Shown: one piece after another, positions 3,460-52,330 of the stretch
Layout: each line of letters begins with the position of its first letter
Numbering within the stretch: position 1 is the first letter of the stretch
Assembly: GCA_973895155.1 (NCBI GenBank)
Contig: OZ316897.1
Location: 6,686,470 to 6,750,469 of the forward strand
DNA from: Marsupella aquatica
Taxonomy: Eukaryota > Plantae > Marchantiophyta
Length of the DNA: 64,000 nucleotides
Direction: 5' to 3'
Position numbers and translations under genes: made by a program
The notes under the pieces: model-generated
What the model was told of the DNA's origin: nothing
What the model saw: only the letters and a program-made list of their open reading frames with translations
Databases searched by the model: none

Positions 3460-3679
3460 GTACTTCTCACTTGTGAGGCATTGAAAGGTCATCTTTCAAT
3501 GTTGAGCCTTGGAGAGAGAGGAGCTTGAGTGGCTATGGTGGCTGTGAGCTCCGCTTGTGTAACGTGGATTCCTTGAGTAGTGCAAAGTGCGTTGGCTTGA
3601 CATACGTGTGTGATCGGATCGGTGCGGGATCGATGGGGTATTGTTGACCGGGATTGTTGTGCCGATTGTATGGAGATTA
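3460..3679 (+). repeat. Repeat A1 (5'-truncated) of element 1
   Basis: Near-identical to 12152-12371 (gtactt(c/t)tcacttgtgagg...tggagatta). Confidence 0.92.
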
Positions 3680-3690
3680 CATTGAAAGAT
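3679..3690 (+). promoter_or_regulatory. Putative self-priming primer-binding site of element 1
   Basis: ACATTGAAAGAT directly after A1 is the exact reverse complement of ATCTTTCAATGT (3491-3502) inside A1. No TGG-starting tRNA PBS is present here. Confidence 0.7.
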
Positions 3691-4287
3691 CATGAGCTTC
3701 AAACTCTATTGTGTGGACAGAAGCTCAGTCTGAGTTTGTCATTGACGGTGACGGTTCATGGTAGCTCGAATCAATTGGATTTGTGTTTGACGCGGATTCA
3801 TGTTTCTTGAATCGTTGGTTCTATTGTTTGAGTACTCTGTTGCTATTCGATCTGGTTTTGGCCAAGCTTGAATGGTGTTGGATCTGGATCTGGTCTAGAT
3901 CTGGATCTGGATTGAGTCGGAGTCTAGATCTGGATCTGGAAAGAGATGGCCGAAGGTTGCTGCTTGTATCGCACTGCTATTTTGTGGACAGATCTGTTGG
4001 AATTTTGAGTGCTCGCAGTGTTTTATTGTCAAGGGACGCTCGTGAAATGTCCCAGAACCGTGCGCGACAGGTTTGTAGAGGTCGAGAGCCATCGACATTG
4101 CCGTTTTTGTGAAGGAAATTGTTGCTTTCGAGTGGCAAATATTGTCATTTCTGAGCCCGACGACTTCTGTTTTGTGTACACACACAACTGTGCGCGCATA
4201 AGGCGGCGCATAAGGTCACCCATCCCGAAAGTGCTCCCAACCACGAGCGCGAAGTCACCCATCGCGAGCGCAAGCAGACGCGAGGTC

Positions 4288-4450
4288 GAGGTCACCCATC
4301 CCGGGGCTATTCCGGGTTGTGAGCGTGAGGGGAGGCACGAGGTCGAGCGCGAGGAGGTCACCCATCCTGGGGCTATTCCGGGTCGTGAGCGCGAGGGGAG
4401 GCACGAGGTCGAGCGCGAGGAGGTCACCCATCCTGGGGCTATTCCCGGCC
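4288..4450 (+). repeat. 66-bp tandem repeat (~2.5 copies) in the 5' leader of element 1
   Basis: GTCACCCATCC(C/T)GGGGCTATTCC at 4291, 4357 and 4423. Confidence 0.9.
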
Positions 4451-5069
4451 GCAAGCGCTTAACTGGCAAGTTCTCATCCCACCTTGTGTACACACAAGTT
4501 TTCACAACTTATTGTTTAGATTCAAGCGCCAGAGGGCTTTATACACTTTCCGGTTTGCTTAGAGCCTTGTTTCGGGCCAAATCAGAGGCTCTTTAGTGGT
4601 TTTTGATAGTTATGAGTTCATCTAAATACACAGATTGAACCAATTGTGCATGGTTTCTCATCTATAACATTGGGACATCATGAAGCCTATTATGAAGGCC
4701 TTTCATTGAACATTATGAATATTTGTTTGATCAATGTGTGATCACTCTTGGTGTGGAGAGTTAGTGTTTGACTATTCTTGTTGATTGGATTCTCTCCACA
4801 CTTGTTTCCTGTTTATGCGCCATGTTGGTTCGGTGTGGGCGCTTGATTCCATAGGAGTGATCCGGGTTTGCAACTGGATATTCTAGTGTGCTGTGTATTT
4901 CTCTCCTGGTGATGTTGGAGTGATGCCCAACACACCATGGTGAGTGCTTGTGGTACTGACAGGAATAGATTGCCCTTAGGGTTAGCACATAGATTAGGTT
5001 AGGGTTGGTTACCACGGATTCTTCTGGTGCTGCTAGATTACTCGATGGGCACAGTTTCGGCCAGCGGCA

Positions 5070-7679
5070 TTGGTAGCAGTCAGCAGTGCAGCTTCAGACA
5101 GTGATTCTGATGAGGACTCAATGACCAGTTCTCCTCATCATCAGGTGGTTGCACCTTTGTTGTGGGATATGGACGAGATGTACGGGGCTACAAAGGGCCC
5201 ACGACGATACTCTGGTGCAGTTGGCATGATTGATCTGGATGACTTCATCCAGGAGTTTGATACGTGGTGCGATATGTAGACATTGCGTAACGCCACATTG
5301 TTTACCCCTTTCATGGCATGGAAGGGATTATTTTAGCATTTGGAGGGGCCACCCATGGATGACTACCATGAGTTTTGGAAGGCTCATTTGGTTGAGATTG
5401 AGGCATGGAGGCAGCATTGGTTGCCTAATTACGTGTCCATCACCTATGGCACTAGTGTGGCTGCCCAACCCATTGCCACAGTTGCTGCTTCTTCTAGCAG
5501 CACTAGCCAGAGTGGCACACCATCCACCAGCAGCACTCCAGCAGCATCCACCGCTACTCCTGCCGGTGTGATTGTGATAGGAACTGGAGTTGCGCCAGCA
5601 TTTAACCGTGTGGTGGAATTCTTTGAGGTACTGAAGCAGAACTATCAGGGTGTAAGAACTGATAAGTTGAAGGGTCTTCAGGAGTTCCAGCGCAAGACTG
5701 GAGAGAGTCTACGTGAGGCATACACTCATATGCGCAGATTGATCACTGTCACCAAGGGAGTGACAGAGGCTCAGGCAGTCCAGTTTTGGTATGCAATTCT
5801 GGACAGAGAATTGTGACGCAGAGTGAGAGATGTCACTCTGCTTAGGGATGCAGATCCCACATTAGCAGTTATTTTTACACTTTCTGAGCGCATTGAGCTC
5901 AATATGGTGAATGAGAAGGTGGTGACTTCCGGATTTGCCAAGGAAGCTCCAAAGGCTGCATCCACATCCACACCATAGCCTACTGCATGGAAGAGCCAGA
6001 GGGAGAAGCCTACTGCACGAGAGTCTACCAGCCAGAGACCTATGCCCTCTTATGCTAGACAGCAGTCAGGATGTTGGACCTGTGGTGGGGATCATGCACA
6101 AAGATATTGCCCAGATCATAGAGGATTAGGGGGAGCATCTGCGCCTAATCAGCGATAGTGTGATCACTGTGGAGCTCTTGGACACACCAAGGATAGGTGT
6201 TTCTCACTCCATCCTGAGTTATGGAGAGGAGGATCCCGTACACATGATCAGGGAAGAGGAGGAGGAGGTAGAGGAGGTGGACGTGGTTGTGGCATGCCAC
6301 ATGCAGGGAGACAGGGAGGTGACGCTGCCCCTACTGTAACCATAGATCCAAAGGATGCTAAGATTGCTCAATTGGAGCAATAGCTAGCTGCCATGGCTAG
6401 TTCCCAAGTGAGACCTACTTCTGGTGATGGGGCATGAACATCCTATGGACCTTCCACATCCCATGGTCCTTCCACATCTTATGGAGCTGATGGAGACCTT
6501 GCCACCATGGGATTCATGTGTGGCACTGCACATATTGATGCATCAGCAGCTTTGACACGTAGGGCAACCAAAGCTCTTGAGCCCCGAGGAGCAGTAGTGG
6601 AGTTAGATCCACAAAGGGGGGATGCACGTCGGCAGACAAAGCTTCCTCAGTCTTTTACATTGTCAGAGATAGTTCAGACTGCCTCTATGAACCTGGTTCG
6701 GACAAACCATGATGTGTGTAAGTTGGCAGAATCAGGTAGTGATGCAGCAGGGATGATAGGTACCTTGCTGGGGGCGGCTACTGCCATGGTACGCGCCCCA
6801 TTATTTTCAGCGACAGACATGCTGAACTTGGGAGTTGGTCCTGCAGAAGTGTTCAGATTGGTAGCTACACTCTGTGAGGATACTCCAGTGGTTGCTTCCC
6901 ATGCAGAAGCAACTTGCAGTGTCGATGCAGTGAAGACCATGCCACCTACTGCTGCTAGTGAGACATGGCATGCAGCAGCAGCGAGGTTGGTGGATTTACC
7001 AGCACGCCCTGCATTTGAGAGGACTAGGTTTAAACCTAGTGTTGTATCATTGGATAATCAGAGTGGTATCTTCCGATTAGTTGGGCCTTCTGGAGAAGTA
7101 TACCAGCCAGAGAGGGTGTTACTGGATACTGGTGCTCAGCCCTTGATCTTGGGAAAGTCTGCCATACGTGGATTGGGATTGCGTCTAGAGGATTTGGAGG
7201 ATTGTCCCTTTCCCATTCAGACTTCATTGGGGGGACCTACACCTACACAGCACATTACCAGGAGACCTCTTGATTTGAGGATTCAGGAAGGTCATACCAC
7301 AGATAGCTCACAGATACAGGCGCAAGCTATTCTGACTAAGGCAGAGTCATATGATGTGTTGGTGGGATGTACAGTGCTCTACCCCATGGGATTTATTCTT
7401 GATTTTTGGGAGGAATCAGTGTCATATAGACCTAATTGGCAGTCAGGAGATGCTCAATTGAGAAAATTGCCAGTGAGATTTAGTGGACCTGTGGGAGGCC
7501 CTAAATCCACACCATTGTCTTTGGCAGCATTCAGTGGTGTAATTGTTGGACCTGATGATTTGATTGAGGGTAATGCGCATGCAGTAGATGTTCCATCATT
7601 GGAGAAGTCTCATAAGGAGCACATCATGCAAAGATTACCTGTTGGCAGTGTTGTGCCACCAGTGTGGGACACTGCATAG
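5070..7679 (+). pseudogene. Gag (two Cys/His zinc-knuckle-like motifs) and aspartic protease of element 1; in-frame stops
   Basis: ORFs 5070, 5340 and 6507 share one frame. CWTCGGDHAQRYC (~6072), CDHCGALGHTKDRC (6159), protease VLLDTGAQ (~7120). Confidence 0.88.
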
Positions 7680-7775
7680 GCCTTGCCACAGACAGCAGCA
7701 CGATTGGTACATGATGCATGGCGTCATGCTTTTACACCATAGTCAAGAGCATAGCAGCCTCTTGCAGATGGACCT

Positions 7776-8700
7776 ATGACTCTTTCACCATTGGATACCA
7801 TTCCTATTGCTTGGCAGTATCCACCGAAGGGTATTTGTTTGTTGGATCTTTTTTGTGGGATTAGCACTGGATTGGCTGCTGTTCTTCAGGAAAAAATTCA
7901 TGTGCGTTGTTATTTGTATGTAGAGTCAGATGAGACAGCACGGAGGGTCTCATTGCGACATGTGGCTATGTTGGTGGATAGATATCCACAGTTGCTGCCA
8001 GTGGATGCTATTCATGGTTATCAGCATGCACTACCTGCTGATATTTCATTGCTGGGGGCAGATCATCTGCATCGTGTTGGCCCCATTGATTTGGTGATTG
8101 CTGGTTGGCCATGTTAGGGCCAATCTAGAGCTGGTGTTGGGCATGGACTTCATGATCCATGCTCTGCATTGTTTTGGGAGATGTTACGGATGCTACGTCA
8201 TCTCCAGCTACATCCGACACAGTCTCCAACATACATTTTGGAGAATGCGCCAATGTTAGGTGATGATCGTAGTCGGATTGTTGCCAGTGTTCACCAGGTG
8301 AGGTCTTGGGTTGGACCTACTGTGTTATTGGATGCTGCACGTGTGGGTTCTCGTGCACATCGTCCACGCTTGTGGTGGACTAATTTGATCCCATGTGAGG
8401 TGCTGAAGCGCGCATTTGACAGCATTCCACGCTCACCAGCCTTAGTGGTGGATAATATTTTGGATCCAGGGCGTCGTGCACAGGGTGTGACCCAACCTGA
8501 TAGACCTCCATTGGCAATGGTCAATGCAGTTGGGTGCCCACGTTGTGCATTACCCACTCTTGTAAGCCACTCTACTTCATATGCATTCAGAGCAGGTGGC
8601 CCTGGACTTGTGTGGGACACAGCTCTCTAGTAGTTAGTGGAACCTACTGCTGATGAGAGAGAGCGTGCTATGGGATTTTTGACTGGCACCACTGCAGTTG
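7776..8700 (+). pseudogene. C5 cytosine DNA methyltransferase domain (DNMT3/DRM-like) inside the element 1 polyprotein; motif X lost by deletion near 8720
   Basis: Motif I LDLFCGISTG, motif IV IAGWPC(Q>stop)G, motif VI YILENAP, motif VIII AHRPRLWWTNL, motif IX EPTADERERAMGF. Same frame as gag-PR. Confidence 0.9.
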
Positions 8701-10287
8701 CCTCTGTGTCGCATGCATCGATTCTTGAAGAGTTACTGGAATTGTTTTGCATTTAGCATGAAAGATTTGGGGACATTAAAGGGTCCTGGTATTCAGATTG
8801 AATTGGCTAGTGATGCGCCAATATTTCGTAGGCCATACCGTTATAGTGACATGGAGAGAGCTCTGATTCAAAGCAGAACTCAAGATTTGTTGGAGGCTGG
8901 ATTGGTGGAGATTTCATATGGGGAGTATGCATCTGCCACAGTGATGCCAGCCAAGAAGGATGTGCATGGCAATTACACAGATAGGCGCATGTGTGGTGAT
9001 TATAGACCCATTAATCGCCAGACAAAATCTGATAGATATACCATGCCCACACCTGAGCAGATCTTTGATGCTGTAGGGCATGCAAAGGTTTTCAGTTCAT
9101 TGGATCTGAGGGCAGGGTACCATCAGCTTCCAATTAGGCATGCTGACAGGTCCAAGACATCATTATGGGGGATTGATTCTTATGGCAAAGATCGTTTGTA
9201 TCAGTGGTTATTCTTACCATTTGGGTTGAAGAATGCACCAACTGAGTTCCAGAGAGTCATGGATCGAATCCTTGCAGGTTTGGATTTTGTCAGATGTTAT
9301 ATTGATGATATTTTGGTCTATTCTTCTACTGTGGAAGAACATCAGCAGCACTTGCAGACTGCGTTGGAGAGATTGAGAGCACATGGGTTGAAGCTCCATC
9401 CTAGCAAGTGTAAGTTCTTCCAAGACCAGATTGAGTATTTGGGCCACACTATATACCTAGGGGGATTGGGTGTACAGCAGACTAAAGTGGAGGCCATTAC
9501 ACAGATTCCTTATCCTACTGATGTGAGTAGAGTTCGTGCATTCTTGGGATTGGCAAGCTACTACAGGAGGTATGTTAAAGGATTTAGCCAGCTTGCTAAA
9601 CCTTTGACCATACTCACTAAGTTGGATCAGGAATGGATTTGGGGTGATGACCAGGAGCATGCCTTTCAGGAGTTGAAGCAAAGGTTGGCATCATCCCCTA
9701 TTTTGAGAAGACCTATTTTAGGCAGACCATTTCAGCTACACACTGATTGGAGTGGAGTAGGACTTGGAGCAGTGCTGACTCAGAAGGATGATGAGGGGAA
9801 TGAGTTTGTTGTGGCTTATGCTAGTAGATCAAACAATTCAGCAGAGGCTAAGTATAGCTCTTATGAGGGAGAGTGTTTGGCAGCAGTGTGGGCTGTTGCA
9901 CACTTTCGTTGCTACTTGTTTGGTAACCCCTTCACCTTGATCACTGATCATCAGCCTCTTAAGTGGTTAATGGAGTCTGACAAGCTTACAAGGAAGCTTG
10001 CACGATGGGCATTGTTGTCACAGGAGTATGATTTCCAGGTGGTGCATAGGCCTAGAAAAGTGAACTTGGATGCAGATGGATTAAGCCGCAATCCATGTAC
10101 CAATCAGCAGGATGAGACTGGAGCCAGATGGCATGATGAGTCAGATAAGGAGATGGTGCTAGGATGGCATGCATCTGCCTTTCTTTGTTGGGTGCCAGCA
10201 TACAGTGGATCTGTGGACTCTACCTCATTGGATGGAGTGGATGATGAGTCTTCAGATGTGGATGTTGGTGAGGTAACTTTTGGATAG
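8698..10287 (+). pseudogene. Ty3/Gypsy reverse transcriptase and RNase H of element 1
   Basis: RMCGDYRPIN, LDLRAGYHQ, LPFGLKNAP, YIDD, LHTDWS, YEGECLAAVWAV, TDHQPLKW. Confidence 0.96.
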
Positions 10288-11733
10288 CAAGATATTCACA
10301 ATGATGTGAGAGTGTTGGAATATTTGCGCAGTGGTTCTATTGTTGGCAGTGTTGATGCCAAAGAACGTGACAGGGTTCTATAAAGAGCCAAGAGGTTTCG
10401 ATGGGAGGGAAATCATCTTTTGAGAGTACTGCATGATGGTAGGGTGTTGGTGGTACCAAAACCATCACAACGAGTATATTTGGTGCGACATGCACACGAG
10501 GAGTTGGGTCACTTTGGTGTGAAGCGCACTTATAGCTTGCTGCAGACATAGTATTGGTGGCGTGGTATGCACACTCATGTCCAGCAGTTGATAGCTAAGT
10601 GTGTGGTATGCAATAGAGTGAGAGCATCATTTAATGCTCTCACTCCCCAGTTGCACCCGTTACCAATCATGGGTTTGCGATATCATTGAAGTTTGGATTT
10701 TGCTGGTCTATTACCTCTTACCCAATGCCATAATCGGTATGTTTTGGTCATGGTGGAGCACTTCTCCAAGTGGATTGAGCTAGTGGCATTGCCAGATAAA
10801 GCCAGTGGAGGAGTTGTTGCTAGATTTTTGGATCGCGTACTCAGTCATTTTGGAGCACCAGCTGAGGTGTTGACTGATCAGGGAACTGAGTTCCGTGGAG
10901 AGTTTGAGAGTTTGTGTGAACAAGCTTTGATTGATCATCGTACTACCTCTCGTGATCATCTTGAGGCAGATGGATTATCTGAGAGAGTTGTGCAAACTGT
11001 GAAGAGAGGATTGCGTAAGTATGGCTTGCAGGTTGGTCATCTGGGAGATTGAGATCTCTAGCTACCTTGGTTAGCTATGGGCTACCGTTTCAGTCGGCAA
11101 GCATCACTTGCATCCTTCTCACCTTACTTTTTGCTCTATGGTAGAGAGCCAGATTTGCCAGCAGCTATTCGTCGTGATGCTGCACCAGTTGTGAACTTGG
11201 ATGATCTTGATGTTTGGGTCAAGGTGTGTTCAGAGAGAGCACGGGTATTTCAGAGAGTGATGCCCATGGCTTTTGACAACCTTGCCATTGCCCAACATCG
11301 TGATACTTTGAGGCATGCCACTATTCGTGGAGGAGGTTACCGTGCAAGCATTCGACGATTTCATCCTGGTGATTATGTTTATTTGCAGCAGATAGCACCC
11401 ACAACACTTGATGTGACCGCAGGCCGGACAATCTTACGTGTGCGTGAAGTGTTGCTTTCTGGTGTCCTGATGTTGGAGGGACGCGATGGTATGGTTTGGA
11501 AGGATCATGTGCGCAACTGTGCACCATGTCACCTTCCCAACATTGATGGTACAGTAGATCCAAGCTTGGCACATGTTCGTGCTGGCTTGAAATGTATGTT
11601 GTGTGGATCTGCTCAGGGAGCAGCTACTATGTTGATTTGTGATAAGTGTTCTAGAGGATGGCACATGTCATGTTTGATACCACCATTGCAGGTGATTCCT
11701 AGTGGATCATGGTTGTGTCCTCAGTGTCGGTGA
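10288..11733 (+). pseudogene. DDE integrase (HHCC zinc finger, rve core) with C-terminal PHD finger (11593-11727), element 1
   Basis: HEELGHFG...CVVC; DFAG...LTDQGTEF...DGLSERVVQT; SPYFLLYGR; C4HC3 CMLC...CDKC...HMSC...WLCPQC. Confidence 0.93.
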
Positions 11734-11897
11734 AGCCGACTAGTTATCAATTGTGTTCTCTTGGCAGATATGGATTGCAGGTAGGTGATCGATGGGGCTC
11801 ACTTGCACCCGACGTCCTGATCTTCACACCTAAAAAGGTGTCTATCAACCTTGTAGAACTCATGGCTAGCTAGAGTTAGGGGACCTTACTCCCAGCT

Positions 11898-12492
11898 AGG
11901 GGGGCGATTGTGGGTTTTGGACATGTGTGGACATGAGTTCCACTTGTATTCCATTCTCTTTTTGTGATGTGGCAGTGTGACTATGTTTGGATGTATGTGA
12001 CAAGCGATGTATGTTGTGTAGCGATGTGTATGCGCACGACAGCTGTCACACCATTCTAGGTAGTGTTAGAGTGTATCGTACTATCTAGATCCGTATGTTT
12101 GGTATGTGTGCTATATGAGCCGATAAGGTTCCGTCAGGTTTGTGTGAGAGGGTACTTTTCACTTGTGAGGCATTTAAAGGTCATCTTTCAATGTTGAGCC
12201 TTGGAGAGAGAGGAGTTTGAGTGGCTATGGTGGCTGTGAGCTCCGCTTGTGTAACGTGGATTCCTTGAGTAGTGCAAGGTGCGTTGGCTTGACATACGTG
12301 TGTGATCGGATCGGTGCGGGATCGATGGGGTATTGTTGACCGAGATCATTGTGCCGATTGTATGGAGATTATTGTGGGTTTTGGACATGTGTGGACATGA
12401 GTTCCACTTGTATTCCATTCTCTTGTGTTTGTGATGTGGCAGTGTGACTATGTTTGGATGTATGTTGTGTAGCGATGTGTATGGGCACGACA
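11898..12492 (+). repeat. 3' terminal block of element 1: PPT (AGGGGGG 11898-11904), B1 (11907-12041), GC, A2 (12044-12371), B2 (12371-12492)
   Basis: Direct comparison of the repeat copies; junction CACGACAGCTGTCA at 12035-12048. Confidence 0.92.
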
Positions 12493-13842: not shown

Positions 13843-14310
13843 TGTCACACCATTTAGAGTGGTAGTAAAGTATATCATACTATCTAGGTATAGAGGTTTT
13901 GTATGTGTGCTATATGAGCATTGTGTTTAGTTTGAGTTGGTGTGAGGGATAGTTATCCCCTTTGTGTTGGCTCAAAGGTCTCATCTTGCAATGTTGAGCC
14001 TTTGAGCATGAGCTTGGTGGCTATGGTGTGGCTGACCAGGTTGTGTGCATGTAACGTGGATTCCTTGAAGCACAAGGTGCGTTGGGCTTGACATACATAT
14101 GTGATCGCGTCAGATGGGGTCGTTGTTGGATTAGCACCGATCGTTGTTCGATTTGCACTATTGAAGAAGATTATTGTGGGTTTTGGGCATGTATGGACAT
14201 GGGTTCTATTTGTAGATCATTCTCTTAGGTTTGTGTTGTTAGATTGTGACTATGCTTGGATATGTGTGACAAGCGATGTATGTTGTGTAGCGATGTGTAT
14301 ATGCACGACA
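13843..14310 (+). mobile_element. Solo A+B unit of a family related to element 1
   Basis: Begins TGTCACACC and ends GCACGACA. Colinear with A2-B2 of element 1 (A 13843-14172, B 14173-14310) but diverged. Flanks ATGT/CTGT (4-bp TSD with one mismatch). Confidence 0.85.
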
Positions 14311-14670
14311 CTGTAGGCAATTTCCAAATGTGGTCCCAAGGTGGTCTACTTCTCCTCTCCACCTCAACGTTAAAATGGGCCCACTAATAGCCGTGTAGGA
14401 TCAGGGCGTCCTGCTGCAAAAGCATATAATCTATTCTTGTAAAAGCCAATTGTAGGCTAAGATTGGATCAAATCCCTTAAAATGAACGGCTAAGATTTGA
14501 TCCTAGTAAAAAACTATAGGGTGGCCTTCACATGAATCTTGAAAAGCCCCCTAACTATATATCCACATGAGCCTGAATGGCCATTCTTTGAATATTAATA
14601 GAAAGGATGACAAAAATCACCATGCATAAATAATGGGATATACAATATATCCCAATGTTTTTTCCATCCA

Positions 14671-14860
14671 CATAAATTTGGGTGGGACACTAGAGTCATA
14701 GTCTAGAGGCTTAAGTCTAGAAGCCTAGACCCCAACTTTAGCTTCTCATCACAATTTATTAGTAACATAAATTTTGGTGGGGCCCTAAAGTCACGGTCGC
14801 GAGGCTTCACTCTAGAAGCCTAGACCCCAACTCTAGCTTCTCATGACAATTTCTTAGTAA
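14671..14860. repeat. Diverged ~95-bp tandem duplication
   Basis: TCTAGAAGCCTAGACCCCAACT...TTAGTAA occurs twice. Confidence 0.75.
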
Positions 14861-39972: not shown

Positions 39973-40220
39973 AATCATGGGTAAAATCTATTTTTCAAAT
40001 TATTTACTCAATTCTGATCGAATGGTGACAATGTTGAGCTCATCACGATTGTCTCTTCAAGATCTTTCCAACGCCATATTATACGTGAGTTTTCATAATC
40101 ATGGGTAAAATCTATTTTTCAAATTATTTACTCAATTCTGATCGAATGGTGACAATGTTGAGCTCATCACGATTGTCTCTTCAAGATCTTTCCAACGCCA
40201 TATTATACGTGAGTTTTCAT
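39973..40220. repeat. 124-bp tandem duplication
   Basis: AATCATGGGTAAAATC...GAGTTTTCAT at 39973 and 40097. Confidence 0.92.
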
Positions 40221-41865
40221 TATGATTTGACTCAACAATGTCAAATCAAAAATTGTTGTCAGGAAAATTTTATGTTTTGAATAAAATCAAAATGGAAATA
40301 AAACCGTTATTGGGAGCAGTTTTACCTCAATCTTTTTATCTTTTGGATTGCAAGTCAAATTTTTTTACATTGTTTTTTACGGCATGGCGTCCTAGTTTTT
40401 ACAACAAAGTTGCCACAAACACGAATGTAGAAGTTAATTTTATCCAAAACAAGTCACTCCTTCCTGTTTGTGGCGTGTCATGATGATGTGGCGTGTTGTG
40501 GAGCCAGGAATTTTGGAAAGGACCTCTATTGGGGGTCCGTAATTAAGAATATTTCTAGAATATTATAGTGACATGGTATTTAAATAGACTAGGATCGCAA
40601 GTGGTATCCCAAAGTAAACACTTAGTTACATTGGGATAACTAAGTAACTAAGACTAACCAAGGTTAAGTGACTTACCCCGTGAAGAAAAAGTCATGACAA
40701 AAAAGTGATATTATAGTAAAGCCTAGTATGTGCCATAGGCAGTTGTGGCAGCTGTAGGAATTTATATAAGGAAAAGGAACCAGGGGTTCTTTTTTGCTTA
40801 CAAGTTATGGTACTTCTGCAGCTAAGTACTCACAGCTAGCTAAGGAGTTTGATAACTTTTAATTTCTTGTCTTAATTGAGGAGTTTATGCAAAAGAGCAT
40901 CAAATCTTTTTGTCGTCTGTCAATAAAACTCATTTCCATTTAGACACAAGAGGCATATAGATTCTTTTGGGGTATAAAACTTAATACACTTCAGCATAGG
41001 ATAATTGTGGCACACTAGGGGATAGTCGTTGGTTTCCCGGTCAAGTCATCGTAAGGGGAGGCGATGAGCTTGAGTGATGTCTGGTTCCGTTTGGCATCAA
41101 GATGTCGTGACATATAGTATCGTAGCCATAGTGTATCAAAAACATACAAGTCACCGGCAATGCATATGTGCAAGCTGCTAGCAACCAACATGCATAGAAA
41201 AAGTCCAATCACATTCCCAAGTGCCAAGAAAAAGCAACTGAGGTGGTATGTACGTAGTGGAGGTGTAAACCTCTGTATCCCCCCTGTATAAAAGGCGTAA
41301 GAGAAACAATCGTACTGAAATCGAATCAAAAACCGGCGGGATGCCAAGATCGGTCGGGAGCATCTAACGAATCACTGTGTGAATCCCGTGTATGGAACTA
41401 ACGAGCACTGTCTGAGCTTTGTCAACAGCGATTCAAGAAGAACTGAAAACCGACAAAGAAAGACATGCCCTAAGTAGATCAAGTCAAGGCGTCACACTAA
41501 CAAGCACGTTTTGCTTCAAGAACGGCCCAGACTTGCTACAAGAACATGACACTAACTCAAGTAGTACACTAGCCCTAACTACATACCTAGCGGGCATGCG
41601 AGGGACATGCCAATGTGCACAAGCGGCACTGTCCCTCGGCATGACAGCTGTCGTGACATATAGTATCATAGCCATAGTGTATCAAAAACATATGTAGTCA
41701 CCGACAATGCATATGTGCAAGCTGCTAGCAACCAACATGCATAGAAAAAGTCCAATCACATTCCCAAGTGCCAAGAAAAAGCAATTGAGGTGGTATGTAC
41801 GTCGTGGAGGTGTAAACCTCTGTATCCCCCCCCAGACCATAGTCACAAGGAGGGCTGAGGAAAAG

Positions 41866-43404
41866 TCAGGTGGCATGTGGAGCACAGGAAGGGCAAAACC
41901 ATAACCCTTCTGGCACCTGGGTAAGTTCAGGCCGCAGGCAGAAAAGATGGTACCCTCCATTGCAATTATCACATAGCAGCATCTGGTCAGCATCGTCAAT
42001 TTGCAAACACACTTTGCAAGGGTAGTCCATAGGTGGAATCCAGGTAGAAGTCATAATGGTGGGATCCAGGTTAGGCAGATGACAAGGGGCGCAATTCTTG
42101 GCATTGTCAACAATTGTGCGCCCATCTACCCCTTGTAACTCTAGCACTCCAGACGGTCGAATAGCTTTAACCCTGAGAATAGTATGACTGGTAGAGGTGT
42201 CCTGGGTGTCGTTAGCTTGCCGCTGCAAGTACACAAAATCTCCCACATCAAACTTCCTGACCTTGGGCTGAAAAGTGCCCCCTCGTGTGTGTGCATAACG
42301 CAGTGTGTCCATATGTTGTGCAATGGCCAAATTCTCCATGGCCATGGGCATAACCCTCCTGAATAGGGCAGCCCTCTCAGAGATCACATCAGACCAAGTC
42401 ACAGCTGAATCCAAGTCCACCACCTGAAGCATGTGAGCAGCAATAGCAGAAGGTGGAACTGGGTGACGACCAAACAACAAGAAGTAGAGAGAAAAGTTAG
42501 ACAATGATGCATGTCTAGACATCCTATACCCCATGGCAATGTAGGGTAAGGCCAGGTCCTAATCCTCCTTGTTTTTGGTGAGGCAAATCTTCCGAAGACC
42601 CTTCTTGCATGTCTAAACCATGCGCTCTGCCAAGCCATCTGCCTGTGGGTGATCTCGTGATGTCCGGCGATGATCAATGAGGGCCTGATCAAGCAGCTCC
42701 TGGAACTCTCCTCTAAACTCTGAGCCCTGGTCAGTGAGACATTCTGCACAAGCTCCAAAGCGGCTGAGAACTTGTTGCAGGAATGCCTGGCTGGTGCTAC
42801 GGGAGGTCTTATCCGGCAATGCCACAAGTTCTATCCACTTGGAGAAATGCTCTATCATGATCATGATCTAGAGATTACCCCGAGATGTGAGGGGTAATTC
42901 TCCAGCCAAATCACATGACCAACGATAAAACATGCCCTAAATAGGGAGTGGATGAAGTGTGGGTTGCCGAGATGTGAAAGAAGTCCTTACCCTATCACAC
43001 TGCTCACACCGGGCAATAACATCTCGAACCTGGCCATGCACACCTCTCCAATGATAATGAGGGACCAAGAGGCTGTAAGTCCTCTTAACGCCAAAATGAC
43101 CAAGCTCAGAATGTACCTTACGGATAAGGCCAACCCTCTCATGAATGGGTGGAACCACCACTTCCCTATCTGGCAAGCAGCGCACAAGATGATCTCCCTT
43201 CCACAAGTAGCACTTGGACCTTTGCTGAATTCGGTCTCTCTGGGCAGCAGTAACATGGGTGGGGTACTCCCCATGCTGCAGAAATCTCAGAGTGTCGTTG
43301 TCCTCCCATATGTCCACCACAGGTTGGTCAACAATGTAGCATGGCAGCAAAGCAAGATAGGTAGATGCATGAAATGTAGGCAGGATGGAAACCTGGTCAA
43401 AATC
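41866..43404 (-). pseudogene. DDE integrase with C-terminal PHD finger (41884-42018), element 2
   Basis: HSELGHFG...CEQC; EHFSKWIE...LTDQGSEF...DGLAERMV; CKVC...CDNC...HLFC...WFCPSC. Confidence 0.93.
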
Positions 43405-45050
43405 CTACCGTGCATCTGAGGAATCATCAGAGGCAATCAAAGGGCTGCGAGACATAGTGTCAGCATTTTGATGTGTCACACCAGGCCTGTGAATTACCTC
43501 AAAATCATACTCCTGGAGTATGAGCGCCCAACGAGCAAGCTTGCCAGTAAGCTTGTCGTTGGTCATCAACCACTTCAAGGGCTGGTGGTCGGTGTAGAGG
43601 ACAAACCTGGTCCCATAGAGGTGGGGCCTGTAATGTATGACAGCCCACACAACAGTAAGGCATTCACCCTCATACGAAGAATAATGATTCTCTGCCTGAT
43701 TGTTGCTCCTGGATGCATAGGCAATGACGTACTCTTTACCTTCCTCATCATGTTGGCCCAGAATGGCACCAATCCCAAGGGCACTCCAATCTGTGTGGAG
43801 CACAAAGACCTTGCTGAAATCAGGTCTTCTCAGCACCGGGTATTCTGAGAGCTTCTCCTTCAAAGTGGCAAATGCTGCCTCAGCATCTGTACTCCATGTC
43901 CAAGTCACATTCTTTTTCAACAAAGCATACAATGGGTGTGCAATGGTGCTGAAATCTTTGATGTAGATCCGGTAGTAATTGCACAACCCAATAAAACTCC
44001 TCAAAGTGTGAACATCGGTAGGAGTGGGCATTTCCAAGATGGATACCACCTTGGCCCAGTGAGCCATGGTTCCATTTGGAAGAATGCGGTGCCCAAGGTA
44101 TACTACTGATCTGACAGCAAATTCACACTTCTTGGGGTGTATCTTTAGGTTCACCTTCTTAAGCCTCATGAATAGCTCCTCGAGGTCAAGTAGATGCTGG
44201 TCAAATCCTTTGCTGTGGACCAACACATCATCAATGTAGCATTTCAGAAACTCAGCACCTTGAAGAACCTGGTCCATGACTCTTTGAAAGAATATGGGCG
44301 CATTCTTCAAGCCAAATGGCATCACCAACCACTCCCATAGTTGGTTACTACCATGGAAAGCTGTTTTCTTGCGGTCCTTTGCAAGCAGCAAAATCTGGTT
44401 AAAGCCTTGCCTTAGATCCACAAGAGTGAAGATGTCTGAGTCTCCAATGTTGTCAAATAGCTCCTCTGGCCGTGGCATGGGGTACCTGTCCCGGGGTGTG
44501 ACCAGGTTCAGTGGCCTGTAGTCCCCACACATGCGCTTCTCTCTCCACAATCCATTGGAATCCTTCTTTGCTGGCATCACTGTAGCTGCTGCAAACTCTG
44601 ATGTAGATGGCTGAATAAGACCAGCTTCATATAACTCTTGGCACCTCTCATCCACCAGCTGCCACTCATGCTTACTCAAAAGATGTCTTCGCCTGAAGAT
44701 AGGTGTTTCATCAACCAACTCAATGGAGAACTGCATGGTCTTGCACTTACCCAAGTCCTTCATAGAGAAAGCAAACACGTTCTCATGCTTGAGGAGCAAA
44801 TTCAGCAGCTGGTCCTTCTGTCTTTTACTCAGGTGGTTGCCCATGAAGAACGTGTAGTTGGCAACACTAGGAATAGGACCTGATGTACTCATGCTTGAAG
44901 AGCCAGAAGTGCTAGCCTCTCCACTGTCCAAGCTGCTAGCATGCTGCTGATAAGGCGATGAGGCCTCTCCAAGGCCTGTTGTATCTGTTGCTCTGGTCTG
45001 ATCCACACCATGAAACTCATAAATAATATCAGCCACGTTACAAGGGACCT
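43405..45050 (-). CDS. Ty3/Gypsy RT-RNase H of element 2 (this segment is open)
   Basis: RMCGDYRPLN, VDLRQGFNQ, MPFGLKNAP, YIDD, LHTDWS, YEGECL, TDHQPLKW. Confidence 0.96.
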
Positions 45051-45194
45051 CCTCCCCCCCAACACTTGGACTGAAGCGATTCATGAGTGTTGAATAGAGG
45101 TAAGTGCACTTGGTCTGGATGCCATGTAGCAGCACCATGGAGTGGTAGGGCTGGAACTCCTGATGCTGGATGAATGTACATCTGAAAAAGGATG

Positions 45195-46145
45195 CAAGTG
45201 ACCAGAAGCCAAGTGAGAGCATTAAGATCCATTACCCTGCCAACTAAAGCATTCCTGGCCAGCTTGGTGATTTTGGTGTGGCATGTAGTACCGGGTTGGA
45301 AGCCCATAGCCCGTTCTCTCTCCTCAGGACTAGGTTCATCCCATGTACCGGTAGAATGTCGGTAAACCAGGCCAGGACCATCACCCTGAAAAGCATGTGC
45401 ACCTGGAAAGGACACAAATGTAGGCCAAGCAGCACGGGGCTGTCCAATGGTATTGGCTAGATACCAAGGTGCTGGCTCTTGCCGTGTAACTGGTTGGCAA
45501 GAACTGTCAGGATCCAAAATCTGGTCCACTGTGAGGTTAGTGTCCCTGGATGTGTGGTGAAGAGCTAACTCCAACAAGGAAGGTGGTGCAAGGTTAGTCC
45601 AAAAGTTACGAAGACGATGTGCATAAGAACCACAGTGCACTGCATCAATGAGAAGGGGTGGTCCCAAGTAGTGCTGGACCACACTGAAATCCTCTTTGAC
45701 CTGTGGTCGCTGGTCAAACTGAGATGGAGTATTCTCAATGATATAACCAACAGCAAGATAAAAGGATTGAGCCCAGGTGAGAATCTGAACCAATGCTGTG
45801 AAAAGGCCAGAACGAGAATCATGCAGTCTAGCACCGTGACCAGCAGCTGAAAACCCTTGGCATTCCCAACCAGCTATTATCACATCAAGGGAGCCAAGAA
45901 GGGTTAAGTGCCGGTGCTAGACAAGCTGGATATCTGGAGGAAAGAAAGAAAATGCAGACTTTCATGCACTGTGTGGAAACTGCTGAGGAAATCGCTCTGA
46001 AAATTCCAGCAAACGGGATTCAGCCACTTGCCTTGCACCTGGATCAATATCCACATAGATGTACTGCTTCACCACCATGCCAGACTGTAGGAGAGCTTCC
46101 AGGCCTGTAGAAATGCCACCAAAAAGCTCAAGTAATGTAAGGCCA
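45195..46145 (-). pseudogene. C5 cytosine DNA methyltransferase domain (DNMT3/DRM-like) of element 2, motifs I-X, two in-frame stops
   Basis: LELFGGISTG, YVDID, IAGWECQG, YIIENTP, AHRLRNFWTNL, EPSPEERERAMGF, RNALVGRVMDL. Confidence 0.92.
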
Positions 46146-49024
46146 TCCGGAGTAGGAGTCCATGTAACTGGTGCGCTCAAGATTGGGGCTATTGGCTGTC
46201 CATTGTGCTGCCCAAGGTCTTCAAACTTGCGCAATGCAGCCACCAAAGGTCCATGGGCTGCTTGGAGCCGTTGTACCACCTCTGGTTGATGATCCACGTT
46301 GCTGGAAAGTGCTGCTATACGTGCAGCAGCATGTGCAGCAGCCACCTCATCGTCATCCTCCTCAATCCAATCTTGCAATGGGTGGTTGACATAGGTAGCT
46401 GTGTGCACTACTTTCAACACACAGTGGTGAGCCATAGGTGTATGGGCACCATGCAAATCAAGTGGAATGTAGCCCAAGTGTGAGCCATCAGTATGTCAAT
46501 CAACTTTGTAGTATGCATGCTCATGCCAGTTGTCAATGGTAAAACCTGGTGGGAACAAAGCCTCCTGGCCAATGAGCACATCATACGTAGTGGCATTGGT
46601 AACCAAACATTTGACTGAGAAATGCAGTTCCTGATCTGTACCTCCATTAACAGTGAGAGTGAGTAAAGTAGAACTCTCACCCAACACATCCTCCACAGTG
46701 CCACTAGCAGTCCGAACGTGCCACTTGGATTGCTATAAATGATCAGTCAACAGTCCCATCTTCTTGGCAAACTGAATGCCCAATATCACTCATTGAGCAC
46801 CTGTGTCTAGCATGACCACCTGAGGAGTGTGACCCTCCAACTTGACCACTGAATTCCTGTTACAGTCAACAATGGCAATGGTGGTGGAAACTGAAGTCCT
46901 GTCACTAGGCACCACTCTCGGCAAATGATGAGGTACCTTGTGAAGGGAGTTAGTGTCCACGGTCTTTCCACTCAACAACATAGCCAGGAAAGATGGAGCA
47001 GCATGACCAGAATCAAGTGTAGCTCTGGTCACACAATCAACAGCAATCGGTACTGGGGGCAGCCAAACCAGTGGAAACATGTAAAGGAGAAGAAGGTCCA
47101 GTATGTACATGAGATTGGACCTCCAAAACCGGTGTCACAGGGGCTAATGAAGAATGCAGTGAACCCTCTAGCACCCTGAGGACAGCTCTAGCATCCAGCT
47201 GTAAATCATGGCAACTGAAAAGTGGAGTTGTAAGAATCCTTTGTGCCATATCGGAGGTGAAATGCTCAAGCAGATCAGGAGAAACAACTCCCTGTGGAAT
47301 GTCAGCAGCACCTAGTGGTGGAATGGATGTAGCTGCAGCTCCCTCCCCCCTCGCCAACAAGGTGCGCTCTTTAGCAAGTGTGAGTGGCTGAAAGGATTGG
47401 GCATGATAGCCCAAGCTTCCCTAGCTCTAGTCATAGGACCGGCAGCAAGACCATCAGCCTGTACAATGCGGCGTGTGGGAGAAATACGGGAGTTAGCACT
47501 GGCCTGCTGGTAAGCAAAATAGGAAGGGCAGAATGAATCTGAAAATTCTGCTGTAAGGCCAGGCTGTGGAGCAGAGGACAACACACACTCACCCATATGA
47601 GCATCAAATGGCAAGCCATAGAAAGAGCGGGGTAGAGGTGCTAAACTGTCAGTGGTGCCTGGGCCAAGGATGGGTTGCACGTGACCAGCCAGTTGAGAAG
47701 GACCAGTAGAGGCAGTTGACTTGCCTTTGATGTTGGCAAGTTGGGCACGTAGGGACTCAACCTCATGAGTCAGAGACTGGAGTTGAGTTGCCTGTGCGTT
47801 GTGAGCCTCCTTCTGAGCTGGTTGCTTCTGTTGCTGCTTGGGCGGTTTGTTGGCACTGGATGCTTTGCCACTAGAAGGAGGAGCAGTTGATGCAGTAGGA
47901 GCCCTCCTAGCTGGTGGGGGAGTGGAAGCAGGAGCAGGAGGGGGGGCCTGCTATCGTAGTTGCTTCCTCTCTGGGAATTTGGCAAAACAAACTGCCTCCA
48001 AGTGACCCACTTTTCCGCAAAAATCACAAGACAGGTCCTCAGCAACAATATCACAGTCATTAGCCTTGTGATTGGGGTTACCACAGTAGTTGCAAGATGG
48101 CAGCATGAAAGCAGCATGGGCTGGCTTGGTCTTGGAACCATACTGTGGCACACGGGAAGGGGTGGCTAGTGTAGGGGCAGCAGCCTAGTACCTGGATCGC
48201 GGTGGACGTGAAATACTGGCCTCATAATGTGCATGGGCCAACTCAAGTTTCTCAGCAGTATCATAGACATTGAGCAGGGTGTAGCTGTCTCCAAACTCTG
48301 AGAATACTTGCTGCAACACTTGCGAATGGAGAGCTGGTGTGCCCTCCAATGCGCGAAGATAGCAATGAGCAGCTTCCAGGTCAGTGATGCTTTGGGTGTC
48401 CTCCTTCAGCTTGAGAAGCCGGCAATACATCATCTTCAAGGTTTCATCACGCTGCCTCACAAAGGTGGCCAACTACATGATTTTGTTAGCACTCTTGATT
48501 GGGAATTCCAATTCAAGAACCTGGAAAAACTCAGCCACTGGATCAGCAAAGGCAAGGGAATCAATGGTGGGAGAAATGCCTGATGTAGCCTGTGCCAAGA
48601 CGGTGGGAGTAACTGGTGCAGTGGTGGGAACTGGAGTAGGAGGGGAAGTGGCAGGAGCAGCAGCATGGGCTGCAATGGCATTCTATAATGTCAACTGTGA
48701 GGCAGCCGCAATTGCAGTGGCATAGGCAGGGTTAGGCAATTGTGTGACAGCAAGCAACCGTTGAGAGTGCTGCTCATACACATCCAAAGCCTCGTGGTGC
48801 ACATACCTGGCTAGCTGCTTAAATGCAAAAGCATTTGTGAAATTGCTGCCATACTTCAACTCCAATTCGTAAACGATAGTGTAGAAAGTGGATTTGAACT
48901 CATGCAAAGAAACAGTGCCTGGCCGCCCACTGAAGCGCTCAATGCGGCCAGATGAGTGACTGGCATCCATGCTGTATGTCGGTGAAGCTGGAACAATCAC
49001 TGATGCAGAAGGAGTAAAGGGCAA
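46146..49024 (-). pseudogene. Gag (two CCHC knuckles) and aspartic protease of element 2
   Basis: RFSGRPG; CNYCGNPNHKANDC; CDFCGKVGHLEAVC; VMLDTGAQ; YDVLIGQEALFPPGFTIDNW. Confidence 0.88.
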
Positions 49025-50756
49025 AGAAGCAATAGTAGGCTTTGGGGTAGTGGTGAAGCGACCGCCAAATGTAGCAGAAGGGTTGCGTGATGTGGGTGCT
49101 GCTGATGTCTACTGACGTCATCAAAATTGCCGAGACTCCAATGAAATGGGCACCAACGGTCGTGGATCACTCCGTAAGTGGTACCTGGGCGTTGGTGGCG
49201 ATGAGCTGCTACCTCCCGGCTCGTCTGCTGACATGCTGCATGCTAACCCGGGTGCCAAATGTACAAAATGTGTGAACACACATAAAAACCGTTACAAAGA
49301 AAAACCGTTGGAGAAAATGACCCTTAAAAGCGCAAATTCAGCCCCCTTCGCATTTGCCTATTATATGCCAAATTGACCATCTGATGTGTAGACACAGGAC
49401 CCGCAGCGGTATGCAGATGATCTGACGTCGGCGGAAAGGAGGGCCCCTAAAATCTATACACATCAGGCCCCATTGTGGACCCGGAAAGTGCAGCCATTCG
49501 GAATGGAAAGCAAGGGAGGCGAAAGGAAAAGAAATACGAGAAAAATGGGCCTGCCCCTAAGTGTATACACATCGGGTTTAAGGCAGACCGGCCGAATGTG
49601 TATAGGCAAGCAACCTAAACACAACAATAAAAATGGTGTGCGGCTCTATGCTGTCGAGCAAGGCAAGGCGCAGCAAGGCGAAAGGAAAGAATCCAGCCCG
49701 AAAGACAAAGAAAGGGCGAGGCGACGCAGGGTAAGTGCCAAAGAAAAACTGATGCAAAATTAAGGCAAGGGGGAACAGAAAGAAATGAGCCCCTCTTAAT
49801 GGATCCCCAACCCTCCATAGGGCTTCGTGCCCCCCTTTATGAACTCCCAAAGAGAAGCTACGAGCTCCCTCTCCCCTCCTTAATGATTCCTGTTGGGCCT
49901 TGTGCCCTCTCCCTCGCTTTGCTTCTGGCAGGGCTCCTCCTCCCCACTTAATGCTCCCTAGGGCTTGGTGCCCTCCTTTTGCTTCCCCCTCCTTCCTTAA
50001 TGCTTGTGCCCTGCAGGGTGGGACTCCCAAGAGAGGGAGTCAAATGATTACTCCCCTCCCCCTCTTTATTCTCCATAGGGCCTCGTGCCCTCTCCATGCG
50101 CTCGCTTCCCCCCAGCTGCTTTGATTGCTGATAACGGTAGGGAAAAAGAAGGAAGGAAATGTGCGAGGCAAGGGGCACGATGCCCTATGCACAGTCTGCA
50201 CACCAAAGCGAAAGGACTGGCGAGGCAACGAAGGCAAAAAATGGCCAAAAAAAAAGGGCAAAAAGAAAACGGGCGCGCGGCCCTATGTAGTCGAGAAGCA
50301 GTTGCACGGTGGCCGAGGCAGTCTGGAGGTTGTCGCACGGCAGCCGATGCAGGATGGCAACCGCGGCCGGGAAATGGCCATAAAACCAACAAAAAAGGGG
50401 CTTCAAAGGGTCGTTAAAAACTCCAGCAAGAGCACAGCGCCCTGTGCAGTCGGCAGCAAGTCGCCGACGAAGATCACGGCAGTAGGTCGTGACGCAGGTT
50501 GCGGCCGGAAAAGAAAAACCTGGGCAAAACGCAAAACCTCCCGGAAGCGCTCCCCTCGTCTCCTCCTGGGTGTACTCCGCCAGTCCGAGAGTTTAAGTGT
50601 ATACACATAAGTGATGTGTATACAAGGAAAAATCTAACTCTAACCCCATCGCTTGATTTTTCTGCAAAGAAATTGTACCGGCTTCGACAAAAATTGTCTA
50701 GACCAGCATGAGCAGCTGAGAAGCACAACGTTTCTGATCTTCTTCCCTTCACTCGG

Positions 50757-50771
50757 CAGTTCTTCTTGAAT
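50757..50771 (-). promoter_or_regulatory. Putative self-priming primer-binding site of element 2
   Basis: The 15 nt at the A1/internal border are a perfect inverted repeat of 50913-50927 inside A1 (ATTCAAGAAGAACTG / CAGTTCTTCTTGAAT). Confidence 0.75.
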
Positions 50772-51834
50772 AAAAGGCGTAAGAGAAACAATCGTACTGA
50801 AATTGAATCAAAAACCGGCGGGATGCCATGATCGGCCGGGAGCACCTAACGAATCACTGTGTGAATCCCGTGTATGGAACTGACGAGCACTGTCTGAGCT
50901 TTGTCAACAGCGATTCAAGAAGAACTGAAAACCGACAAAGAAAGACATGCCCTAAGTAGATCAAGTCAAGGCGTCACACTAACAAACACGTTTTGCTTCA
51001 AGAACGGCCCAGACTTGCTACAAGAACATGACACGAACTCAAGTAGTACACTAGCCCTAACTACATACCTAGCGGGCATGCGAGGGACATGCCGATGTGC
51101 ACAAGCGGCACTGTCCCTTGGCATGACAAAGACCCCTTGGAAGACATTCGCTTGATAGCTAGGTGAGTATTCCCAAACCCCTCAGTTGAGACAAGTGGGT
51201 GATCTCTCAGGGATAGCGGATACTTTGAAAAATTGAAGACTAAGGCTAGCTATAAGGGTGAACAGGACAGTGCCCAGCAGACCTTCAGCAAAAATACTCA
51301 CATGCTGCCATTTTACTCAAATTGTCACAGAGAATATTCATAATTGGTCTATCCTGGGTCTATCCATCGTCCATCAGAAACTATAATACAGAGTTTCACC
51401 ACTTTTTGAAGTGGTAGTCATTCAAATTTGGAGAGGCTTTTTAAGTGAAAGAAAAGGGAACTGTAAAAAGAGAAAGGAATAGAAAAGAATTATGTTTTGT
51501 GTGAACACTCTTTTCCAAGCAAGAAAAGTACAAAGGCTTCCCCTTTACCATCCATGCTACCCCATGCTCCTCCCTCTACCATCCATGCCATACTATGCCC
51601 CATGCCATATCATCCATGCAAAGGAAGTGTTGCATGTATCATGAGAGGAGTTTAATGACAAATATTTTACATAATCAAGAAAATAGTGCACAATTTAATC
51701 AATGAGACAAAGAGAAGACAAGAAAAATAGTGAAAAATAAGGAAGGTTTTAAAAGATATAAATTACAAAAATAATTTTTAAAATAATTCTCATTTTGTTG
51801 TACTTTGGTGGTGGTTTTTGCCTCTCTTTGTGTC

Positions 51835-52330
51835 ATGACATCTTTCACTCGACAATTTTTTTTACGCAATGAGATCTTTCTAACAAAGATATATTTTTCA
51901 CCATGATATTTTTCAACTACATCTTTAGCACAACGTCATCTATTACGCATTGATGTCTTTGGCCGAACGATATCTTTTTTACTACATCTTTTGCGCAACG
52001 ACATCTTTCAAGCAACCACATATTTTACTTAATGATATCTTTTATTTAACAATATTGTAAATGCAAGGACCTATTTATGCAACAACATCTTTTGTGCAAC
52101 TAAGACTTGATAACATATATGCTAACAACCATCACTTTAGTTATGGACCATTTTGTACTTAACAACAACTTTATACTTAACAACATCTTGGGCATAGTGA
52201 CATCTTTTGTCTCAATGACATTGCGACATGACATCTTGGGTGACATGACATCTTTTCTCTTAACGACATCTTGGGCGTCATGACATCTTTTCTCTTAACG
52301 ACATCTTGGGCGTCACGACATCTTTTGTGC
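51835..52330. repeat. Degenerate array of (AC)GACATCTT(TT) motifs, probably DNA-transposon subterminal repeats
   Basis: Many GACATCTT/ACATCTTT copies at ~15-35 bp spacing. Confidence 0.6.

Follow-up and report, generated by a model that had tools for sequence, protein, structure and literature searches.

A window of 64,000 nucleotides from the liverwort Marsupella aquatica (NCBI GenBank assembly GCA_973895155.1, contig OZ316897.1, positions 6,686,470 to 6,750,469 of the forward strand) carries at 41103–51128 a retrotransposon, el1, in which the enzymes of Ty3/Gypsy elements are combined with split direct repeats, A and B. We show that its layout, A–primer-binding site (PBS)–internal–polypurine tract (PPT)–B–GC–A–B with TG...CA ends and a 4-bp target-site duplication (TSD), is a trait of a family that extends from Klebsormidium to liverworts. 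el1 is probably a decayed copy from the Gypsy-DNMT3 family of streptophyte Ty3/Gypsy elements, inserted by a circle-type route in which the tips of the complementary DNA (cDNA) would be joined and one palindrome inside the long terminal repeat (LTR) would be opened by the integrase.

Repeat layout and ends of el1

A repeat search and direct reading gave the order A1–internal–B1–GC–A2–B2 for el1, where A1 and B1 are the first and A2 and B2 the second copies of the repeat segments, and all coordinates of the element are read along the minus strand. The first bases are TGTCA at 51128 and the last are CGACA at 41103, and the element is flanked by an exact TSD, TCTT (AAGA on the plus strand), at 51129–51132 on the 5′ side and at 41099–41102 on the 3′ side, both read directly. 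A1 (50770–51128), which starts TGTCATGCC, is the sole 5′ repeat with no B before it, and is followed by an internal region of ~8.9 kb. At the other end, a PPT of eight G (41826–41833) adjoins B1 (41649–41825), whose end ...GTCACGACA is the predicted right-end integrase site. A GC spacer (41647–41648), the centre of the palindrome GACA-GC-TGTC, separates B1 from A2 (41288–41646), which again starts TGTCATGCC, and the terminal copy B2 (41103–41278) supplies the CGACA of the 3′ end. The halves of a single palindrome make up the outer ends of el1. The A copies, 359 nt each, are 97.2–97.5% identical, and the B copies, of ~176 nt and each preceded by a G-run, are ~96% identical.

An earlier note on this DNA had described the order A1...B1-GC-A2-B2, the TGTCA and CGACA ends and the exact 4-bp TSD, and every one of these points was re-read as correct. 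Its only omission in the layout concerns the A2/B2 joint, where nine extra nucleotides, ACA followed by GGGGGG (41279–41287), are present compared with the A1/PBS and PPT/B1 boundaries. These nucleotides are not predicted from A1 and B1, and the G-run resembles a retained piece of the PPT.

The ends were also examined with the contigs of four public runs mapped to 40900–42300. The summed contig depth jumps ~1000-fold exactly at 41103, and heterogeneous flanks that do not agree with one another abut both 41103 and 41646. Heterogeneous flanks together with the depth step at 41103 indicate that the outer ends of el1 are the ends of the family and not of this copy alone.

The same layout in related copies

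Protein relatives came from Calypogeia fissa, Marchantia, Closterium and Klebsormidium, and their loci were fetched and read. A second element of the same window, at 3460–12491 on the plus strand, belongs to another subfamily (~52% reverse transcriptase (RT) identity to el1) and encodes protease (PR), methyltransferase (MTase), RT, integrase (IN) and a PHD finger at 7290–11727. Its 3′ end consists of B1 (~11903–12041), GC, A2 (12044–12371) and B2 (12372–12491) around the palindrome CACGACA-GC-TGTCAC; B1 ends ...GCGCACGACA, A2 runs from TGTCACACC after the GC, and B2 ends ...CACGACA. Its A1 (3460–3679) is truncated at the 5′ side. A solo A–B unit, TGTCAC...CACGACA, which is kin of this second element, lies at 13843–14311 on the plus strand with the flanks ATGT and CTGT, matching at 3/4 positions. 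The unit could have arisen by recombination between A1 and A2, or could be an A/B fragment excised from a joined intermediate, by cuts at both of its palindromes, and then inserted directly.

Outside the window, the Klebsormidium locus L002 reads AGGGGGGA, B, ...CGCGTGACA-GC-TGTCATGCC..., A and then B, and the K. nitens homologue has 47% RT identity to el1. The Marchantia locus L001 shows the same layout, with one half of the palindrome decayed to CACGATA. PPT-B-GC-A-B was likewise read in the Calypogeia fissa loci L004, L005, L060 (two elements) and L061, and in the JGI contig L006. A perfect 4-bp TSD with A1 alone at the 5′ end was found in five copies, namely el1 (TCTT), L005 (GTCA), L006 (GGTC), L060 (AGTG) and L061 (ATGT), and the TSD of L035 matches at 3/4 positions. 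In L005, the A copies are 99.4% and the B copies 100% identical. Insertions in Calypogeia are clustered at L060, where the B-GC-A-B 3′ end of a further L005-subfamily member (L060:1757–2299) stands 300 bp upstream of A1 of the L060 element.

Among metagenome assemblies, 53 loci carry the 20-nt palindrome, and in 34 of the 53 a B2 of at least 100 nt follows A2. Merging the same insertion across samples leaves ~19 independent insertions among these 34 loci, most of which end (C/T)GACA beside unrelated flanks. The B2 end is decayed or truncated in L008 and L019, and is not resolved in L052 or, as tabulated here, in L035.

Taken together, PPT-B-GC-A-B was read in ~29 of ~29 insertions (10/10 from genome assemblies and ~19/19 from metagenome contigs). 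The GC-centred palindrome is kept in 9 of the 11 tabulated copies, which come from five sources, and has decayed in two. A G-rich PPT adjoins B1 in most copies examined; the old, decayed L061 shows none. All seven visible 5′ ends consist of A without a preceding B, being complete in el1, L005, L006, L035, L060 and L061 and truncated in the second window element. No A1 could be located in three loci, Marchantia L001, Calypogeia L004 and Klebsormidium L002, the last with an N gap at 8630–9509, and these are informative for the 3′ half only. Among the long metagenome contigs, L016, L021 and L025 stop short of A1, and Closterium L003, with N gaps and tandem repeats, gave no layout information.

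The relatives also bear on whether el1 might be an isolated rearrangement or a product of misassembly, derived from an ordinary element whose AB-type LTR lost B at the 5′ end and acquired a tandem piece of LTR at the 3′ end. One copy alone could be read in this way, but the same layout and palindrome recur in the second window subfamily, in four other species or sources and in ~19 further insertions; PBS after A and PPT before B are found in nearly every copy with a readable boundary, and the ends at 41103 and 41646 are family-wide. An artefact is refuted by these copies, and we give it practically no credence. The earlier note had taken ordinary paired LTRs among the relatives as what would speak for such an accident, and none was found in ~29 of ~29 insertions; the A..BAB copies that it expected, with 4-bp TSDs outside TGTCA/CGACA-type ends, are represented by five full and perfect examples.

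A second lineage with the identical 20-nt palindrome was seen in seven ENA metagenome contigs (L013, L017, L034, L038, L040, L054 and L058). Its order is RT-RH-MTase-IN-PHD, with the MTase between RNase H (RH) and integrase, and it has an A of 1526 nt, a B of 178 nt, an open frame of >2693 aa upstream of RT and a putative 12-nt self-primer. In L013, A runs into the PBS, and in the L034 cycle it runs into B, both being ambiguous short-read paths through the 1.5-kb repeat.

Priming, the A2/B2 joint and the proposed route to insertion

The PBS of el1, TCAAGAAGAACTG (50757–50769), adjoins A1, has no tRNA match and is predicted to be of the self-priming type. Its exact 13-nt reverse complement, CAGTTCTTCTTGA, lies within A1 at 50915–50927 (A position 202–214; A2 equivalent 41433–41445), so that the predicted self-primer, which would also be the 5′ end of the genomic RNA, begins at position 202 of the 359 nt of A. 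An exact complement between mid-A and the PBS, counted from the first base after A, was found in 8/8 copies, with a length of 13 nt in el1, 11 in the second window element, 11 in L005, 12 in L006, 13 in L035, 12 in L060, 14 in L061 and 12 in L013 of the second lineage. The sequences differ among copies and the pairing covaries; the PBS of the second window element, for example, is CATTGAAAGAT and pairs with its own mid-A site. Shuffled A sequences reached the observed complement length in at most 1 of 5000 trials in any copy, and in 0 of 5000 for el1. The minimum-energy fold of the predicted RNA, from the self-primer to just past the PBS, contains a closing 15-bp stem between both sites. In addition, the loose ends beside the A end (41288) in other copies of this genome give a consensus equal to the el1 PBS. 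A tRNA-type PBS was considered and rejected; the first bases after A1 are not TGG, and self-complementarity accounts for the sequence there.

Such a self-priming arrangement is known from the Tf1/sushi elements and the plant Tcn1 clade (Neumann et al. 2019, PMC6317226). As in those elements, the PBS of el1 complements the predicted first 11–14 nt of its own RNA and not a tRNA, to judge from the sequence; they have ordinary LTRs, however, and the likeness concerns the PBS arrangement and not phylogenetic placement. These data suggest that el1 was self-primed like Tf1, with the 5′ end of its RNA in mid-A. The primer site after A and the PPT before B had been pointed out earlier, and this assignment is much strengthened by the covarying pair of self-primer and PBS.

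An RNA start in mid-A, taken together with a PPT before B1, means that the reverse-transcribed LTR would have the form B-GC-A. The unique 3′ region (U3) would then comprise B, GC and the 5′ part of A, and the repeat and unique 5′ regions (R-U5) the rest of A. The predicted cDNA tips carry no TG or CA, the left one being ATACA... and the right one ...TTTTAT in el1 or ...CAAT in copies of the L006/L035 type. The TG/CA ends of the integrase type stand instead back to back inside the predicted U3, as ...CACGACA-GC-TGTCAY....

In an alignment of 19 independent insertions, indels concentrate exactly at A2/B2, with only two other indel columns in the surrounding 130 nt. A plain joint, ...TTCAAT/ATACATG, is present in nine copies, and the others differ by −3, −2, −1, +1 or +2 nt or by a 19-nt duplication. 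The joint of L004 shows a 2-nt overlap, and the relatives join A and B without the nine extra nucleotides of el1. This pattern is suggestive of a joint formed anew in every cycle. Deletions of 67–115 nt across A2/B2 (equivalent to 41269–41337 and 41201–41318) also occur in some contigs from the same organism, and are either larger joint deletions or later events.

We propose the following route to insertion. Transcription would start in mid-A, and the first 11–14 nt of the RNA would fold back onto the PBS and prime the minus strand, with the G-rich PPT before B priming the plus strand. The U5 tip of the cDNA would be joined head to tail with the U3 tip to give the A2/B2 joint. At one palindrome, the integrase would nick each strand behind its CA; the nicks, staggered by 2 bp, would yield in one step two recessed CA-3′OH ends with 5′-GC overhangs, and concerted strand transfer of both ends would leave the 4-bp TSD. 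Because the GC spacer is self-complementary, one staggered break gives the geometry of 3′-processed retroviral ends. The presence of an A/B joint in the inserted layout implies that a U5 tip was joined to a U3 tip, since a rolling or 1-LTR form would not contain this joint. Head-to-tail joining followed by the opening of a single palindrome would be the simplest path to the observed structure.

Several observations weigh against this route. No extrachromosomal form was observed in the public runs, which consist of assembled contigs, and the circle is deduced from the inserted copies. The second permutation, A-B-GC-A-internal-B, was found in none of ~29 insertions (0/10 in genome assemblies alone). 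The sites of transcription start and poly(A) addition, and integrase cleavage at the palindrome, are predictions from the sequence. Many metagenome contigs are short-read assemblies through repeats. Finally, the joint variants are in part shared within sublineages and the A1 end is lacking for most copies, so that inheritance or later indels could also explain them. The earlier proposal, a 2-LTR circle opened at CA-GC-TG, is partly supported: it stands in its anatomy and logic, whereas the circle itself is deduced and one of the two permutations it allows was never seen.

This one-sidedness deserves attention. According to the model, opening the palindrome next to the PBS would give the observed layout, and opening the one next to the PPT would give A-B-GC-A-PBS-internal-PPT-B. 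A symmetric 2-LTR circle contains two identical palindromes, and random opening would predict the second permutation about half the time. The single permutation thus suggests either that the choice of site is biased or that the intermediate is not a symmetric circle.

An alternative keeps the same B-GC-A LTR and the internal integrase sites but dispenses with a ligated circle. Here the plus strand would jump end to end from the U5 tip to the U3 tip as template, or the integrase would cut one palindrome of linear cDNA and insert both ends, leaving the rest to host repair. Joints with 1–2 nt of microhomology (AT) or with small additions fit template jumping as well as end joining, and a step driven by a polymerase can be directional, which could explain the single permutation. 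However, a mirror-image jump is conceivable too and the asymmetry is not strictly predicted, the repair version implies a transient chromosome break, and the case for either version is itself inferential. We regard this alternative as unlikely, though worth keeping in view. For the circle-type route, a broader statement, that a lineage with a retroviral-type DDE integrase, from Klebsormidium to liverworts, obligatorily uses a joined-ends intermediate and cuts a pre-formed palindrome in U3, with a built-in directionality from an asymmetric step, seems to us evenly poised between true and false.

Coding content and relation to known systems

Stop-to-stop frames of el1 were scanned against Pfam, and the RT was compared with solved structures. 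The domain order read from the frames is gag-PR-MTase-RT-RH-IN-PHD, all on the minus strand. The gag region (47954–49108) has broken frames and a CCHC zinc knuckle (zf-CCHC, E 1.4e-5), and homologous gag pieces are present in related loci. It is followed by an aspartic protease region (46499–47134), which was recognised in translation by the motif MLDTGAQ and has no Pfam match but tblastn matches in relatives. The C5 cytosine DNA methyltransferase (45041–46495) is split by a frameshift and scores 23.4 bits with PF00145 (cutoff 22); the score is weak in el1 since the frameshift splits the domain, and reaches 30.9 bits in the near-intact relative L005. The methyltransferase of this family is called DNMT3-type in the literature (PMC5890265), from which we take the label. 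RT and RNase H of the Ty3/Gypsy type occupy 43408–45231 (RVT_1, 1e-28; RT_RNaseH, 5e-36), and the nearest solved structures are those of Ty3 RT, PDB 4OL8 (E 2.8e-68) and 7Q5B (E ~3e-68). The integrase (42616–43404) has an HHCC zinc domain (Integrase_H2C2, 2e-13) and a DDE core (rve, 1e-10), with an interruption between them, and its C-terminal region (41869–42558) ends in a PHD finger (PHD, E 3.8e-12). The frames of el1 are disrupted by many stops and frameshifts, and on this reading of its sequence el1 is a dead copy. The near-intact L005 from Calypogeia fissa has three long open reading frames (ORFs) with the same domains and nothing else. Between PBS and gag, el1 has a leader of ~1.6 kb (window 49581–50592, minus strand) with low-complexity open frames and no Pfam match, and L005 has a similarly long leader of ~1.7 kb.

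A search with Pfam gave no match to a tyrosine recombinase (Phage_integrase) in any frame piece of el1 or in the ORFs of L005. The earlier note had assigned to el1 an HHCC and rve integrase without a tyrosine recombinase, together with a C5-MTase and a PHD finger, and the Pfam results agree on both counts, with PF00145 above its cutoff. It had named a tyrosine recombinase in intact copies as a finding that would overturn its proposal, and the near-intact L005 showed none.

In its enzymes el1 is a Ty3/Gypsy element (Metaviridae). It has RT, RNase H and an HHCC-DDE integrase in the order PR-RT-RH-IN, TG...CA ends, a 4-bp TSD, a PPT before U3 and a PBS after U5. It differs in that its integrase sites lie inside U3 and not at the LTR tips, and in that it lacks two equal terminal LTRs, having A only at the 5′ end and B-GC-A-B at the 3′ end in a circularly permuted arrangement. 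el1 thus belongs to Ty3/Gypsy by the enzymatic definition and departs from it by its unequal terminal repeats.

The repeats, in contrast, resemble those of PAT, Ngaro, kangaroo and TOC in the DIRS order, which share the split direct repeats A1...B1A2B2 and an implied joined-ends intermediate, whereas el1 has no tyrosine recombinase and combines a Ty3-type RT with DDE-type ends and TSDs. To our knowledge, DIRS-type elements make no such target-site duplications. It could be argued that circular cDNA is integrated, as for PAT, Ngaro and DIRS, by a tyrosine recombinase that these copies have lost or that is supplied in trans, and that the integrase is a bystander, and A1...B1-A2-B2 is indeed the layout described for DIRS-type elements (PMC5890265, legend). 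Nevertheless, neither el1 nor the near-intact L005 has a Phage_integrase domain, five copies combine TG...CA ends with perfect 4-bp TSDs, which are marks of a DDE integrase, and the RT is of the Ty3 type. We consider involvement of a recombinase very improbable.

The layout itself has been seen before. The earlier note knew of no described LTR retrotransposon with the proposed life cycle. The layout, however, is not new: De Mendoza et al. 2018 (PMC5890265) noted it in Klebsormidium and stated in the legend of Fig. 4c that the repeats of KnitGypsy-Dnmt3 are structured as in a DIRS element whereas its domains are those of Gypsy, with no explanation. KnitGypsy-Dnmt3 shares with el1 a Ty3/Gypsy pol with an internal C5-MTase and A-coding-B-A-B repeats, and the Klebsormidium homologue has the palindrome GTGACA-GC-TGTCATGCC and a PPT, as in the family of el1. 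The MTase lies between PR and RT also in L006, L016 and L021. The two accounts differ in that PMC5890265 gives no ends, TSDs, PBS, PPT or mechanism, and in that el1 is a dead liverwort copy. A 2026 preprint merely names the Gypsy-DNMT3 lineage, and our literature search found no paper giving the ends, palindrome or priming of the family or a mechanism for its layout. Beyond PMC5890265, the present analysis adds the palindrome, the predicted self-priming and the restriction to a single permutation.

The proposed cleavage has parallels in two other systems. Two papers (PMC1180852, PMC1905944) describe cleavage of a palindromic LTR-LTR junction by the integrases of foamy virus (PFV) and HIV-1. 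By analogy, the integrase of el1 would cut a CA-NN-TG palindrome of abutted ends to make ends competent for integration. In the retroviruses, however, it is the circle junction that forms the palindrome, around a 4-bp spacer, and the route is at most a side pathway; el1 carries a ready-made palindrome with a 2-bp spacer within U3, and its route seems obligatory. In copy-out-paste-in transposition of the IS3/IS911 type, a DDE enzyme acts on abutted ends a few bp apart on a circular intermediate. el1 may be similar in pairing a DDE enzyme with an abutted-end junction on a circle, which is proposed here; IS3/IS911 elements differ in being bacterial DNA transposons without reverse transcription, and their junction is made by the transposase and not carried by the element.

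According to the textbook view, integration of LTR retrotransposons and retroviruses proceeds from the tips of linear cDNA only. If the proposed route is true, an old plant lineage has its integrase sites inside the LTR, and the tip-only rule is not general. The old circle-precursor model of retroviral integration reportedly goes back to Panganiban and Temin in 1984, and the family would then be a natural, fixed version of that pathway, which was rejected for retroviruses. It would also offer a natural system for the cleavage of abutted-end junctions by an integrase, with a link to IS3-type transposases, and would explain how a repeat arrangement like that of DIRS elements comes about where no tyrosine recombinase is present. 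In bryophyte and charophyte genomes, the family will be missed or wrongly annotated by LTR-finding software built to look for two equal terminal repeats. The DNA methyltransferase and PHD reader of the family also make the biology of its integration and silencing of interest for epigenetics.

Outside the elements, the window contains other short tandem or dispersed direct repeats at 40000–40226, 52149–52328, 14670–14859 and 4288–4419, with units of 124, ~35–83, 95 and 66 nt, respectively.

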